64,000 nucleotides of DNA from Selaginella moellendorffii (taxonomy: Eukaryota > Plantae > Lycopodiophyta). The stretch lies in contig NW_003314290.1 in NCBI RefSeq assembly GCF_000143415.4, positions 248,001 to 312,000 of the forward strand, read 5' to 3'. A program made the position numbers and the translations under genes. Shown here piece by piece: positions 11,744 through 26,341 of this stretch. The notes beneath the pieces were generated by a model. It searched no databases. It was not told where the DNA came from and saw only the letters and a program-made list of their open reading frames with translations. The first letter of the stretch is position 1, and each line of letters starts with the position of its first letter.

Positions 11744-14700
11744 ATGGACTTTCTCATCGGGAGACTGGTGTTAGCGCTGGCGATGGTGGCCGTGCTTGTC
11801 TCTGCCGATGATGATGTTGATGCTGGACCGGTATACATCGTCAGGATGAAGGGACATCCGATTGCCGCTATGATCGACAAGCCTGTCTATGCCATTAATG
11901 AGGAAGATGATCATGAAACGAGGTAGTATATTGTCTTCATTGTTTCAACTCGTAACTTCGTCTTGTTTTTTTCGTTTTCTTTTTGTTTTTCCAGAGATTT
12001 CGTGGAGATGCATACGGCAAGCTTGAGACGGAACCACGATGCGTTTCTGGAAAGCTTGCTCGAAGAAGGGAGCTACGAGAAGCTGTACAGCTATACGTAC
12101 CTTATGAATGGTTTCGCTGTGAAGCTCAGGGATGAAGTTCATGTAAGTCGTTTCCTTATAAAGTTTTACTTGTTTCGGTACTTATCCGGTGCTACGGTCA
12201 GGTTGATTCTATCAGAGCTCATCCGGATGTTCTATCGCTGGAACACGAGGTGCATTTCCGAAAGACAACGACTTACACACCGTTTTTCTTGGGCCTGGAT
12301 CCAAGAGCTTGGAAGAACGTCGGGACATTTGCAAAGGCCGGGGAAGATATCGTCATTGGAGTTCTGGATACTGGGATCGATCCACGCCACCCCAGCTTTG
12401 CAAACACCACCTCAAGGCCTTACTCGTTCAATCGACACTGGGAGAAGGTGTGCGCTGCGTCCCCGACATTTCCCAAAGGTTCCTGCAACGGGAAGATCAT
12501 TGGCGCTCGTCACTTCTCCAAAGGCATTGTAGCTGCGAACGCGTTCAATGCGAGCAATGACTACGATTCCCCGCTCGATGGTGATGGTCACGGGAGGTAA
12601 GCTTAACGTTTCTCTTCTCTTTAGTGGTAAAGCAGATGTTTTGTATCTACAGCCATACCAGCTCTGTTTGTGCCGGCAACAATGGTGTTTACGTGAGTGT
12701 GGACAAGTATATCTATGGGAGAGCAAGCGGAATGGCTCCTCGCGCACGGTGAGCTCATGTTTTTGTAGTAAACCGTCCATCAACTTAGCTCTCTCAGGAT
12801 TGCGGTGTACAAAGTCATTTACAGAGATGGTGGCTACTTGTCTGATGTTCTTGCGGGGATTGATCAGGTTTGCCTTGCGCTATTTTCTTCTTTGTTTCAT
12901 TCCGTGAGTTGGAACACAGGCCGTTCAAGATGGAGTTCATGTGCTGAGTATCTCTCTCGGTGCCACTAGTGGAGCCTACGGTGTTCCGTTCCTCAACTCC
13001 TTCGACATTATGATGCTCCTCGCGTTCAAGGCGAACGTTTTCATCGTCCATGCTGCTGGGAACAACGGTCCTGCCGCCTTCAGTATGAACTCGTTCGGGC
13101 CGTGGGTGTTGTCGGTCGCAGCTGGTATGACAGATCGAACGTACTCGACTCCGATAATTCTCGGCAACGGGCAATGGGTGTATGGAACTGGTCTAACAGG
13201 TAAGCGTGTGAAACACTCTCGTAGAAGGCCATCGCTAACCTTTGGAACCATTTGCACTGTAGCTGGAACCAGCGCTCGCAAGTTGTATCCTTTGATTTAT
13301 TCCCAGGATGCGTACATCGCCGGGGTGACGTCCTTCGACCAGGAGTTTTACTCTTACTGCTCCGACCCCTCGCCTTTCAACAAGACTCTCGTCAGCGGGA
13401 AGATTCTCATTTGCAACTTTGTCGACTACTTTTCTGGTGGTGCCGTCACACAAATCGAAGGCGCTCTCGCAACTGCCATTGCCACGGGAGCTGCTGGCCT
13501 CCTCATTGTCTTCCCAACATCCGCCGAGAAAACGCCAACCAAAGACACGGTCTTTGATCCAATTCCTTTCACGATACCCGCGAGCTTTGTGGTGGATCCA
13601 AACGCGTCAGCGGTAAGCTGTTTTGTTTCCAAGCTTCTTAACTTGTTTCTTTTTCGCTCTGGCAGCTCATACTACAACACTACAACGAGAAGACTGTGAA
13701 AGACAGCAAGGGGCAAGTGTTGAGGTTCGATGCACAAGCCAGGATCGAGGACTCGAGACACCCCTTGTATCCATTGGAAGCACCGAGAGTGGCCTCGTAT
13801 TCTTCCAGAGGCCCGGTCTACGCTGACACGGTTACGTCCCTGGTAGCAGACGTGATGAAACCAGACGTCCTCGCACCTGGAAACCAGATATGGGGTGCAT
13901 GGACACCCAAAGGAACCGACGCAAACTCTTTCACAGGCAAGCCTGTAACTTCAGCTTCTTGTTCTTTTTCTTACAAACTCTATATACCAGGTCGCAACTT
14001 TGCCATGCTTTCCGGGACGAGCATGGCCACTCCGCACGTCGCCGGAATCGCCGCGCTCTTGATCCAAAAGTACCCGAGGTGGCGCGCCTCAACCATCCGC
14101 TCGGCGATCATGACCACCGCGGACAACTTCGACAACCGCGACCGCTGGACGCGAGCCGAGCAGCCGTACTCCAACTCGTCCCAGGCGATCGGCCGGGCCT
14201 GCCCCTTCGACATTGGCAGCGGTGCTATCAACGCCACCGCAGCGCTCGATCCAGGCCTCGTCTTCGACGTTGGTAAGCTTGGCTTTTCTCGTTTTCTCGA
14301 TCCAGAGCTTTCACAAACTTGTAACGCTCGTCTTCCTCGTTCCCAGGATTCCAGGATTACGTGGACTTCCTGTGCGAGATCCCGGGGGCCGACCAAAACT
14401 CGGTGGAGTACTCGACGGGGGCTCATTGCGGGCCTGAAAACAAGAACCCCTCGGACCTCAACATGCCGTACATCACGGTGGCGAACTTGATAGGCAGCCG
14501 GGTGGTGCAGCGAACCGTGGTAAACTTGGGCGGCGAGGAAACTTACAACGTCACGGTGAGGCATCCAGCGGGGGTGGACGTGTCGGTGAAGCCGCGGGTT
14601 TTCAAGGCCAGGACTGGGAAGCCAGTGGTCATCAACGTGACGCTCACCGCGACGCAGACCAACCAACAGTTCACCTTCGGGTATATGATCTGGGACGGCG

Positions 14701-21148: not shown

Positions 21149-24100
21149 TCAAAGCACCAACTTTGTTAGCTCAAAACTTGGTCGACCTTTTGGAGCGATA
21201 CTAACGCATTTAACTTTCAGCTTATCTCCAACCGAGTAGTCTGATGTACTCGCTCCCTGCAAAATTAATTTAGCAGGGCGGAAGTGAATTGGAAGCATTG
21301 GACTCACCTTTCCCGTCTTAAGTACACCACTTGCGCCGGTCTCCATTTTCACAGCTACACCACTCTTCCGGATTTGCTCGATAGTCACATGGTATATAGC
21401 ACCAATTTCCGCTGTGGTCTGCTTCTCTGTACACGCTTTCTCGTGCTTCTGTTCATGGCCAGCTCCATCAACCTTTTGTTTCTGTCTTCTCTTTGTTTGC
21501 TCCTTTTCCTGTTTTTCAGCACCAGCGTCTGAGGCAGTCTTCTTTGATGATCCACCATGTAAGACTTTCATCACCATTAAGATTTTTGGTTCGTCTTTCT
21601 TTGTCTTCTCTTTTTCTTGTTTTTCAGCACCAGGTTTTGCCAGCTTCTTCGGTGAGGCTTTGCTTGAAATTTTCTTTTCCTCTGACATACTGGGGCTGTC
21701 TTCTGATTGACGTTTTTCTACCCCGGATTGCTGCAGTTGGGTCTTTCCAGCAGTCAACACCGCAGTAATCCTCTCGGCAGTTAGATCGAACGTTTGTGAT
21801 GATTTCTTTGCTTGTGTGATTGCTTGCGTGACTTTCGCAAGAACTGGAATCGTAGTAGTTGCCTCTGCATCTTCAGTAGGAAAAATGTCAGATCTTAACA
21901 AAAATCTAAAGTTCAACTTACTAGCTTTATTTATCACTGCTTTACGTGAAAACTTCAGATTTCCACGGAAGTCTCGTCCTGTACAGAGTACCGTAATTTG
22001 CTGTCCAACTGACAGTACGTCTGCAATAGCTGTTACCTGGGAAATACATGACAAGTTCAGTAATGCTTGAAGAGAAAGGCTTTCTAAACAGCGTACAGGT
22101 TCGTGTGAGATTTCTGAAATATGAAGAAGCCCTTGTTGCCCGCCATCGAAGTCAATAAAAGCTCCAAAATCTTTTATAGCGGAAACAGTTCCCGTATACG
22201 TTTCACCGACTATGATTTCTCGTCCAACTAGAGCTTCAATCTGCAAAACGAATATTAAAAGAAAAACGAGAATGCGCAACATGCATACCATCGATTTTGC
22301 CACTTTGAAGCTTTTTTCGGATCTTGAAATAATATGGACATTTCCATCCTCGCCCACAGTCAAACGAGCTCCTGTAAACAGTCCTTGAATGCACGAACAA
22401 GGGTAGAAGAACACATGTACCTGAAACGGATTGTAAATGCCTTATGTTCGAACCACTAGGACCGATAAGTCTGCCAATGCTTTCTCGTTGAATAACTATC
22501 GTTCCTGGAAAAGAAAGGACAGAACTATAGCCTATAGTTAGGAAAAAACATTACCTCTTCTAGGTGTATCTTGTCGTTGAGTGTCCCGCGGTTTAGAAAT
22601 TTCCTTTTCCATCAAATCCAAGATTTTCTTCCGAGCAACATACGCAGGTTCTAATGCCTCGCAAAGAATATGCAGTGGCACTCCTGGAAGCTTTATGTCA
22701 AGCTGGATCGCAGTCACGCCTTTTTTTGTTCCGGCAATTTTGAAGTCCATGTCACCCAAGTGATCCTCTAGTCCCTAAGAAAAAGATAATTCAGCGTACA
22801 GCCAGAGAAAGGCAGGAAAAGACGTACCAAGATGTCCGTCAAAATCTTATAGTTCTTTATTTCTCCAGTCTCAGCATCAACGTTCGTCATAAGACCCACG
22901 GAGATGCCCGCCACATGAGACTTTAAAGGAATGCCAGCATCCATCAAAGCCAGACTCCCTGTACCCAAAGTTAAATCCATGAAAAACCAATGACCCGTTT
23001 CTACCTCCACAAACCGTTGCCATTGACGATGAGCCATCAGAAGCCATGACTTCTGAATTCACTCGAACACTGTATGGAAAATTCTCATCTTCAGGCGGCA
23101 ATAGTGCTACCAAGGCCTTCTCGGCTAGAGTACCTGTGAAATGGCTTATATCAATGAGACCTTCGAAAATAACAACTTTACCATGCCCAACTTCTCGGCG
23201 GTTTAGGCCTCCTACTTTGCCAACTTCGTTAACAGAGAAGGGGGGAAAACTATAGTGGACCATAAATCGTTTCTTAGGAGGACCAACTATTGAATCAAGT
23301 TTCTGTGCATCTTCGGGAGCTCCCAAAGTTACCGTACATAGCACCTAAAAACCTTATAAAGATAGAGGCAAAGCACAAACACGAAATGCCTACCTGTGTA
23401 TTCCCTCGCGAAAACAAAGAAGAACCATGAAGTGCTGGATATATTCCGGCCTCGCAATAAAGGTCCCTGACGTCCGTCAGAGACCTGCCATCAACCCGAA
23501 TGTTCTTTTGAAACACATTTTCCCGGACAATCTAAAGGAGACAATTAGGTACCGGAGATAGAAACTTTTTTTCATGACTTACTTGCTTCTTTACAGTGTC
23601 AAAGCCAAGCGAAAAACGGCTTAAAGCGGCCTCGTCATTTTCTTTCTTGAGAATATCCTGCACATTTTCCATTGCTTTTCCGAGAGCCTTTCCTCGTTCA
23701 AACTGCAAAAACAAACATAAATACACTGCTTCAAAGTTTTCATCGAACCTTTCCAAGCGTCGGGTTATTAACCACTGCTTTGATATGTTCTTCCGATAAT
23801 CCACGGATTTTCTCTAAAACGGGGACATCAACCTTTACCACTTGTACAGGCCGTTTCCTGTTTCCAACCTTTGCTGCTAGTCGACGCTGTGGTTCTATCA
23901 GTTTGGAAGCCTGCAGCATCGAGTAGCAAAGTAATGTTTGCTTTTTGTAAGAAAATTAAGTACCTCCGAATGTGCCAGTTTCAAGGCAGCAGTGAAGTCT
24001 TTATTTGTTATTTCTCGCGCTTGTGTCTCGATCATAAGTGACCTTTCAGCTGTACATGAATATATCAAATTAAGGTCACTGCCGCTGAGCTGAAACAATA

Positions 24101-25050
24101 GACAATTTTAACGCGCAATTCAATGGCTAAAGATAAAAAATGAGAAAACAATACCGTGTCCATGTCGGGGTTAACAACAAACTTTCCATCAACACGTCCT
24201 ATGCGTACTACTCCAATAGGACCATTCCAAGGTACATCAGACAACGCTAAGGCAGCCGAGGCTGCATTAGCTGCGAGTATATCCGGATCCTGCTCCCCAT
24301 CTGAACAAAGGACATTGGCCATTATCTGTTTAGTTTGAGAAAATCAGAAACGAGACACATCAAGGAAAAACAAAACCTGGGTTTCGAAGTAGTAGCCCTT
24401 TGGAAAGAGAGGCCGAATCGATCTGTCAATGACACGACCGCAAAGAAGCTCCCTCTCTTTTGGTGCTCCCTCCCTACGCATGAAAGTGTTTGGAATTTTT
24501 CCCTGTGCATAAGACTTTTCTCTATACTCCACCTGACAAAGAGAGAGATTATGAACAGAAAAACAAAAGAAGATCAAACCTGGAGAGGCATGAAATCCCG
24601 ACCCGCATCGAGCCTTTCGTCGGACACAACAGTGACCAAAACTTTGGTTTCGCCAGCTCCACAGACCACTGCTCCAGCGGCAAACTGCGCGAGCTTTCCA
24701 GTCTCAAAAGTTAAAAGCTCCGGCCCGATCATCACAGACTCTTCAAACACTTGCATTTTTGCTGGAAGAAAACAACTCAAACTAACAAGAGGTTCTTAGA
24801 AAGAAAAATCTCTTACCCGCAGACTCGCGCCATGGAGCCGATGTCTCGGAAAGGATTTGCTGCCGGGCGCTCCTGGAAGTAGCAATGTGACGACGCCACT
24901 GGTGAAAGAACGACGATCAACGTGGCATTCTCGCAAGGAAATGGAGATTACCCGAGTGGGAGAAGGCGCCGATTGGATTTGGAGCTGCGGGCACACATAG
25001 GACGCGATCCGGTGCCTCACCGCTGCTCCCGCCCTCCAGCTTCCCTTCAT
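21149..25050 (-). CDS. PNP2: Polynucleotide phosphorylase, probably the mitochondrial type (2 RNase PH + KH + S1 + Lys-rich linker + second S1-like domain); many exons
   Basis: [77 protein letters not shown]; Arg/Ser-rich N-terminal presequence. Confidence 0.95.
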
Positions 25051-25101
25051 GGCCCGATAAACCCTAAACCTTGGGGCGATTTTATTTCTACTCAAACGGC
25101 C

Positions 25102-26023
25102 ATGTCTAGGGCTCTTTATTCCCTCGTCTCGCAATTTTTCCAAGCGCTACCTGGGCGTGGCGCTGCGAGGATCGCGGGAATGGCGTCTCCAGCATTCGAC
25201 AAGGTGAGATCATGGAAGCATTTCTTTTGCTCGATCTAGTGGCCGCACTGTCGATGCTTCGATCCAGGAAATTTTCTTCTTTGGGCCGTATAAGATTGAT
25301 CCCAGAGAAGTGTTCTTGGTCTCCAAGCATTCCTTTGCTCTCGTGAATCTAAAGCCCGTTGTTCCTGGTAAGGCATTGCTCTCTTTCTTTTTCCTTTGTA
25401 GCTAAACGAATGTTTCTTTTCTCAGGTCATATCCTTTCTTTCCAGCAGAACTTTGCTCGTTTCACTTGTCTTCCTTGATCTTTCTTTCTTTTTTTCTTTG
25501 TTTCTTTTTTATACATGTTCTTGTGAGCTCAAAGCGTGTGGTACCTCGTTTCACTGATCTCAGCAGTGAAGAAGTTTGCGATCTTTGGCTCACCGCGAGA
25601 AATGTTGGTGAGAAAGTGGAGAAGCACTTTAAAGCATCCTCGTTAACTTTGGCAATACAGGTATGATCATCGATCAAAACCTTTGTTTGCGTTTAAGTCA
25701 CTCTTTTAAGAGCTCTTTGTTTTGTTGTTCCAGGACGGGCCACAAGCCGGCCAGACCGTCCCTCACGTACACATCCATGTCCTCCCGCGAAAAGCCAGCG
25801 ACTTCGAGAAGAACGATGAGATCTACGACGCTGTAAGTTAGTGGCAGCTTTTCTGTCACGGAATCGAGAGACACGGGAGGGACTTTTGATTTTTATTTCC
25901 TTGCAGATCGATGATAAAGCGAAGGCAATGAACGACCATCTCAACCTTGACAAGGAGAGACGCGACCGGACAATGGACGAGATGGAGGCCGAGGCCAAAG
26001 ACCTGAGAGCTCTCTTCGACTGA
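25102..26023 (+). CDS. FHIT: FHIT-family HIT hydrolase (bis(5'-adenosyl)-triphosphatase); alternative ATG at 25180; contains a 3-nt micro-exon at 25426-25428
   Basis: [22 protein letters not shown]|G|HVLV..AIQ|[38 protein letters not shown]. Confidence 0.93.
25429..25514 (+). other. U12-type (minor spliceosome) AT-AC intron in FHIT
   Basis: 5' end ATATCCTTT, branch-like TTCCTTGAT at 25471-25479, 3' end TAC. Removal restores PGHVLV. Confidence 0.88.
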
Positions 26024-26341
26024 AGAAGATCAAGGAAACACTATAGAACCCTATAAACTACAGGTATGCCAGTGAATCATCCCTGACACTGTCTCTTCCA
26101 CTAAGCACTAAAGCGCGGTACTTTTCCTTCCAGACCAATCAGTCAATGAGTGGAGTAGTCACGTCATGAATCCATAACGGAAGTTTCAAAGCCATCTTTT
26201 TTCTGGTAGATAAAGTAGGACTACTGTGCTGCTATTGCTACGATTGCGACGCATTTTGCAGTATATGAGGAGCGAGTATGTGGAACCTCTGGAGTGTGCT
26301 CGATCATCACCGGGACTCGCGAGAGAGAACACAGAGAGAAG

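Follow-up and report, generated by a model that had tools for sequence, protein, structure and literature searches.

The FHIT gene of Selaginella moellendorffii includes a coding exon of only three bases, GTC (25426–25428), that lies between a GT-AG intron of the major class (intron 2, 25368–25425, 58 nt, phase 1 in a Gly codon) and an AT-AC intron of the minor, U12-type class (intron 3, 25429–25514, 86 nt, phase 1 in a His codon). With a probability of roughly 0.92 we regard this as a real, constitutive exon between two independent, old introns. An earlier examination of the letters alone (the sequence-only reading) had proposed the micro-exon, the two intron classes and a PGHV product, and all three are supported by RNA contigs and by conservation. 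Positions refer to the window, the 64-kb stretch of DNA that was analysed, and FHIT lies on its plus strand.

The gene has six coding exons that sum to 567 nt (188 codons plus the stop) with the frame intact, and its product is the 188 aa RefSeq protein XP_024536731.1 (P0065), with which all exons are identical letter for letter. Exon 1 (25102–25203) encodes residues 1–34, its joint being seen in the reads, and is followed by a 64 nt GT-AG intron (25204–25267) that is spliced in 4/4 runs. Exon 2 (25268–25367; residues 35–67) ends with a Pro codon and the first G of the Gly codon, the micro-exon provides the last two bases of Gly68 and the first of His69, and exon 4 (25515–25660, 146 nt) continues from there. 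Exon 5 (25734–25832) carries the histidine triad HVHIH and has its joints in the four runs, and exon 6 (25907–26023; residues 151–188), also seen in the reads, carries the stop codon. In an exon-by-exon search human FHIT residues 3–33 align with exon 2 and 36–83 with exon 4; this leaves exactly two codons, which are supplied by G+GT (Gly) and C+AT (His), so that the Gly-His pair built across the splice sites is G34-H35 of human FHIT. By alignment the His is His35, a residue other than the catalytic nucleophile His96, and one that we take to have a role in nucleotide binding. It was found in 119/119 homologues having the motif in the first homologue search. The proposal that the micro-exon builds this conserved His needs refinement: what the exon contributes to the His codon is its first base only, together with two bases of the Gly codon.

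Exons 4 and 5 match the Pfam HIT domain (5e-06 and 1.2e-06), and the best structural-database matches are to Fhit. By sequence the protein is a full member of the FHIT branch (Ap3A hydrolase/adenylylsulfatase) of the HIT superfamily, and an ordinary one; only the gene structure is unusual. Ap3A hydrolase activity has been described for the Arabidopsis Fhit family (PMC7072326), not for the Selaginella protein. Two RefSeq Selaginella proteins differ at residue 139 (S/G) only.

The splice signals on either side of the micro-exon are those of two different intron classes. Exon 2 closes with CCT G at 25367, and all coordinates of the sequence-only reading proved exact. Intron 2 has a GTAAG donor, a pyrimidine tract and a YAG acceptor, and its removal is seen in RNA. 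Intron 3 opens with the U12-type 5′ site ATATCCTT(T) at 25429–25437, as do all 14 plant loci including this one, and ends with AC at 25513–25514, the mature contigs picking up at 25514/25515. The longer donor sequence ATATCCTTT at 25429 is the sole copy in the window. By chance 3.3 U12-like donors are expected per window, and about 3e-6 occurrences of YAG-GNC-ATATCCTT within the 147 nt gap between exons 2 and 4. A U12-type branch-point motif, TTCCTTGAT, is predicted from the letters at 25471–25479, with the branch A at 25478; it falls in the −55 to −5 region scored by intronIC, yet lies 36 nt from the 3′ end, compared with 10–13 nt in orthologues, an oddity that counts against the micro-exon reading. 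After this motif comes a long pyrimidine run, with no further AC before the one that ends the intron. The remaining RTATCCTT matches in the window seem to be due to chance, and the one inspected, at 13285, sits in apparent coding sequence. An Rfam search of the window gave no match. A U6atac RNA has been reported for S. moellendorffii (PMC2396436), which is indirect evidence in favour of minor splicing; its donor-pairing motif is given there as ATGGA, a variant that could bear on AT-AC retention. We infer from the consensus signals, with circumstantial support from the Arabidopsis drol1 mutants discussed below, that intron 3 is excised by the minor spliceosome.

The same intron pair, for which orthologues were to be checked, was found in 13/13 further complete land-plant loci, all with the layout CAG/GTC/ATATCCTT. 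These came from a metagenome scan and from look-ups in named genomes, and comprise Sphagnum magellanicum, Amborella, Phragmites, Arabis alpina and Cucumis melo as well as moss-like, Brassicaceae-like and legume-like contigs; several of the metagenome contigs are close kin, so that the independent lineages number nearer eight than 13. AG-GTC-ATATCCTT is kept amid otherwise diverged introns (147–1378 nt), and GTC is invariant although any GGN encodes Gly, all plant loci having T as the wobble base of the Gly codon. In all plant loci tested exon 4 measures 146 nt, and the branch motif lies 10–13 nt from the intron end in those further loci for which it was tabulated. The minor intron ends in AC in the land-plant loci with the exception of Phragmites (L023, intron end at 1549), in which it is AT-AA and the database protein reads PGN; AA is the commonest non-canonical ending in plants.

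The RNA evidence consists of assembled contigs from four studies (X1, X5, X9 and X12) whose status as RNA-seq is probable, being guessed by the search tool. The mature junction, for which a check in RNA had been proposed, is present in the contigs of all four, so that the exon is internal, falls within the 1–15 nt range of plant microexons and has both of its junctions supported, at the level of contigs and not of raw junction-spanning reads. A single 1188 nt contig in X9 links 25369 straight to 25514 and gives the mature G GT C AT GTT. In X5 and X12 an upstream contig ends three letters beyond 25369 and a downstream contig opens with the matching overlap, the contigs forking exactly after GGTCAT, as expected. 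The other branch of the fork is a form from which 25368–25425 has been removed and in which the AT-AC intron is kept, represented by contigs in X1, X5 and X12; it shows the upstream junction alone, as a 58 nt GT..AG joint in X5 and X12 and as a loose end in X1. The search for partially spliced intermediates that the sequence-only reading had called for was thus answered in three studies. Depths for the retained and the spliced form were 8.3 versus 16.6 (X1), 8.7 versus 388 (X5) and 20.6 versus 120 (X12), so that the share of the intermediate in contig depth is none in X9 and elsewhere about 33, 2 and 15 %, respectively; such ratios are rough, since contig assemblies are not quantitative and drop rare forms. 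At the end of intron 2, the binned depth is wholly accounted for by the intermediate contig. Retention of any other FHIT intron was not seen in the contigs of the four runs, and with no depth over those introns DNA contamination is ruled out as the source of the AT-AC-retained form. The reverse intermediate, with the U12 intron out and the U2 intron in, was not seen in the contigs either, but as these lose rare forms it is unseen rather than excluded.

Together with the position of the sites, these observations suggest how the two introns may be removed, and we infer from them which spliceosome acts on each and that the intermediate is a precursor. The major spliceosome would usually take out the short upstream GT-AG intron first, whereby GTC would be fused to exon 2 to form an ordinary 103 nt exon, and the slower minor spliceosome would next excise the AT-AC intron and complete the His codon. 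Three bases are probably too few to hold both complexes at once, which makes bridging across the exon unlikely. Skipping of the exon would need a GT donor to be joined to an AC acceptor, and there is no substitute AG nearby in Selaginella, so that failure should appear as retention; a transcript retaining the AT-AC intron meets a stop 16 codons in, ahead of the catalytic triad, and would thus be non-productive. The sequence-only reading had supposed that both spliceosomes act across the exon, probably in a fixed order; a preferred order is supported by the U2-out/U12-in form as the only intermediate found, although it need not be obligatory.

The arrangement has known relatives. Plant microexons of 1–15 nt (for example 1 nt in APC11 and VPS55, 9 nt in AP2, and that of invertase; PMC8831610; PMC12409088) resemble the FHIT exon in being tiny, constitutive coding exons in phase 1, conserved in land plants, frequently mis-annotated and flanked by introns that are removed successively, but they usually detain the upstream intron, whereas FHIT detains the downstream one. 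In the crosstalk modules reviewed in PMC8329584 (the prospero twintron, SRSF10, the SNRNP48/RNPC3 USSE and MAPK8/9) major and minor signals also lie close together on one transcript; those modules, however, offer competing or alternative choices across exons of normal size, while FHIT needs both introns removed and has its sites 3 nt apart, presumably too close for cross-exon definition. FHIT, conserved from mosses to grasses, has just three bases between a major acceptor and a minor donor. An old question, the sharing of one transcript by two spliceosomes that cannot bridge an exon, can therefore be put to the test here, either in a minigene (about 400 nt) or in the Arabidopsis mutant data that already exist.

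A stronger version, which adds to the sequential removal proposed here, holds that the order is obligatory and that the AT-AC intron is a selected regulatory switch by which minor-spliceosome activity sets the level of FHIT and hence the turnover of dinucleoside polyphosphates. We consider this possible but rather doubtful. In its favour are the U2-first intermediate as the only one seen, with a share that ranges from none to about 33 %, the early stop that follows from AT-AC retention in 12/12 loci, the T used as Gly wobble base throughout the plants, and expression data from Arabidopsis, in which splicing of AT-AC introns requires DROL1 and is defective in drol1 mutants (bioRxiv 10.1101/2020.10.19.345900). 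According to the same study AT5G58240, the Arabidopsis FHIT gene, is among 232 genes that are down in both drol1 alleles, with a logFC of −1.89 in drol1-1 and −1.62 in drol1-2 (about 3–4-fold lower). FHIT is absent from the 48 affected AT-AC genes listed there, as might be expected if its AT-AC intron were unannotated, and two of the genes that are listed sit in the same part of the drol1 down list. With an intron of the same minor class as the DROL1-dependent ones and an mRNA that drops in drol1, FHIT is probably an unlisted DROL1 target, although the fall could be indirect, as it is for many of the 232 genes. Against a switch, slow splicing and retention are generic to minor introns, chance alone would put stops into retained introns, levels cannot be read from contig depth, and neutral persistence of minor introns has been argued (PMC10639083).

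The sequence-only reading had expected gene finders to mis-model the site, and they do so: both JGI v1 Selaginella models run into intron 2 or intron 3, and the proteins of Phragmites and Cucumis (both PGN) and of Arabis (PAH) are wrong while the DNA holds an intact micro-exon. The RefSeq Selaginella protein, with PGH at 67–69, is already correct. Among 101 further database homologues the Gly-His pair is missing at this site in 15, and the five of these that were checked are all gene models that lack the micro-exon. Some of these proteins could be taken as evidence that in some plants a bypass by the major spliceosome alone is real, the GT-AG intron being extended to an AG that precedes the AC end by three bases, to give an in-frame Pro-Ala-His. 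The minor intron does close with AG-CAC as its final 5 nt in Arabis (L027) and in a Brassicaceae-like contig (L004), the Arabis and Ginkgo proteins are annotated as PAH, and in MAPK12 a major donor is known to be spliced to a minor acceptor. Nevertheless, we think such a bypass unlikely: L027 and L004 retain the full micro-exon signals, there is no such AG in Selaginella, and gene finders would pick that AG regardless, the PAH and the Phragmites PGN readings both being the outcome of ignoring the micro-exon.

The mature junction by itself would also fit one non-canonical intron of 144 nt (25370–25513, AA..TA), with the donor lending its GT, the AC end its C, and no micro-exon at all, and the resulting mRNA would be identical letter for letter. 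The intermediate, in contrast, marks the GT-AG intron as a unit of its own, spliced alone in three studies; moreover AA..TA suits no spliceosome, AG-GTC-ATATCCTT would be conserved inside diverged introns, and Phragmites would get Asn instead of His, so that this explanation is very improbable. Still less credible is a recursive (zero-length) splice site at 25424–25427, with the rebuilt GT reused as a major-class donor, for although AG/GT is the signature of such sites and its T is invariant, TGCAG/GT is a strong plant acceptor consensus anyway, and reuse would leave no bases in the mRNA and so remove GTC and the Gly-His pair, whereas the mature contigs keep GTC and the intron ends in AC.

The elements of the micro-exon arrangement are already known, namely AT-AC introns, a minor intron in animal FHIT and plant microexons as short as 1 nt, but we could not find a description of their combination. 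The plant microexon catalogue admitted GT-AG and GC-AG introns only (Yu et al., 2022, PMC8831610), which places an AT-AC-flanked exon outside it, and the MEPDB clusters (MEP01–45) likewise have GT/GC-AG introns on both sides and exclude FHIT by its AT-AC downstream intron. In the portions of text and supplements available to us from PMC8831610 and MEPDB (PMC12409088) there is no mention of HIT, FHIT, U12 or AT-AC, and the available portions of the supplements of minor-intron papers do not name the FHIT arrangement. The searchable literature holds no description of an FHIT micro-exon between major and minor introns, an earlier listing in U12DB, ERISdb or IAOD being possible. Microexon pipelines restricted to GT/GC-AG introns and minor-intron surveys based on annotation can thus both overlook such exons, and recognition of this one corrects those plant FHIT models that show a false loss of the invariant Gly-His.

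The minor intron of FHIT is probably older than the land plants. A published table (Olthof 2019, PMC6717393) lists a minor intron in FHIT of 551 kb in mouse and 523 kb in human, and the donor context in that table fits the same phase 1 position in the His35 codon. The animal and plant introns have in common a U12-type donor and a branch motif; they differ in that the former has a GT-type donor and exceeds 500 kb, while the latter is AT-AC (AT-AA in Phragmites) and measures 86–842 nt, and in that in animals the upstream exon holds the entire Gly codon, so that, unlike in plants, there is no micro-exon. Minor-intron positions common to plants and animals are generally taken as ancestral, and the FHIT minor intron is therefore probably ancient. 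In the comparison of loci, Chlamydomonas reinhardtii, Cymbomonas and four chlorophyte-like contigs proved to share the position of the GT-AG intron in the Gly codon, and none of these has an intron in the His codon; both the GT-AG and the minor intron are absent from these FHIT positions in Catenaria and in several algal contigs. The GT-AG intron would thus already have been there in the green-plant ancestor, three bases upstream of the old minor intron, and loss of the minor intron would have cost the chlorophytes the micro-exon as well.

One further locus, L013 (1117–1197 of the eukaryotic contig Ga0180216_1031039, 41 % GC), has a 3 nt FHIT exon, GAC, between GT-AG introns of 43 and 35 nt. 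Pro-Gly-His is recovered only via this exon, and the introns are at the same two positions, as far as a single contig known from its DNA can tell. The second intron lacks a U12 donor, but CTCTTAAT stands close to its end, as if a minor intron had been converted to the major class. This locus hints at an age greater than that of the plants for both introns, or else at two separate gains of the upstream site. That the pair predates plants and in land plants enforces an unskippable major-then-minor splicing, with the AT-AC intron as a conserved checkpoint through which the FHIT level would be coupled to minor-spliceosome activity, is a speculative proposal that we regard as improbable in its entirety.

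A polynucleotide phosphorylase-like gene with RNase PH and S1 domains (21149–25080, minus strand) lies head to head with FHIT, and as FHIT contigs start at about 25080 and one X5 contig extends to 25069, the 5′ ends of the two genes may lie almost next to each other. The 3′ UTR of FHIT contains a 70 nt intron (26064–26133) that is spliced in 4/4 runs and a second one of 56 nt (26206–26261) that is present in X9 and for which X5 and X12 have matching loose ends, and the FHIT contigs continue toward a lipid-transfer-protein gene at about 26294. The reads also show allelic differences (25442, 25778 and 25797), namely a 5 nt deletion within the minor intron in X1 and two exon 5 substitutions in X12.
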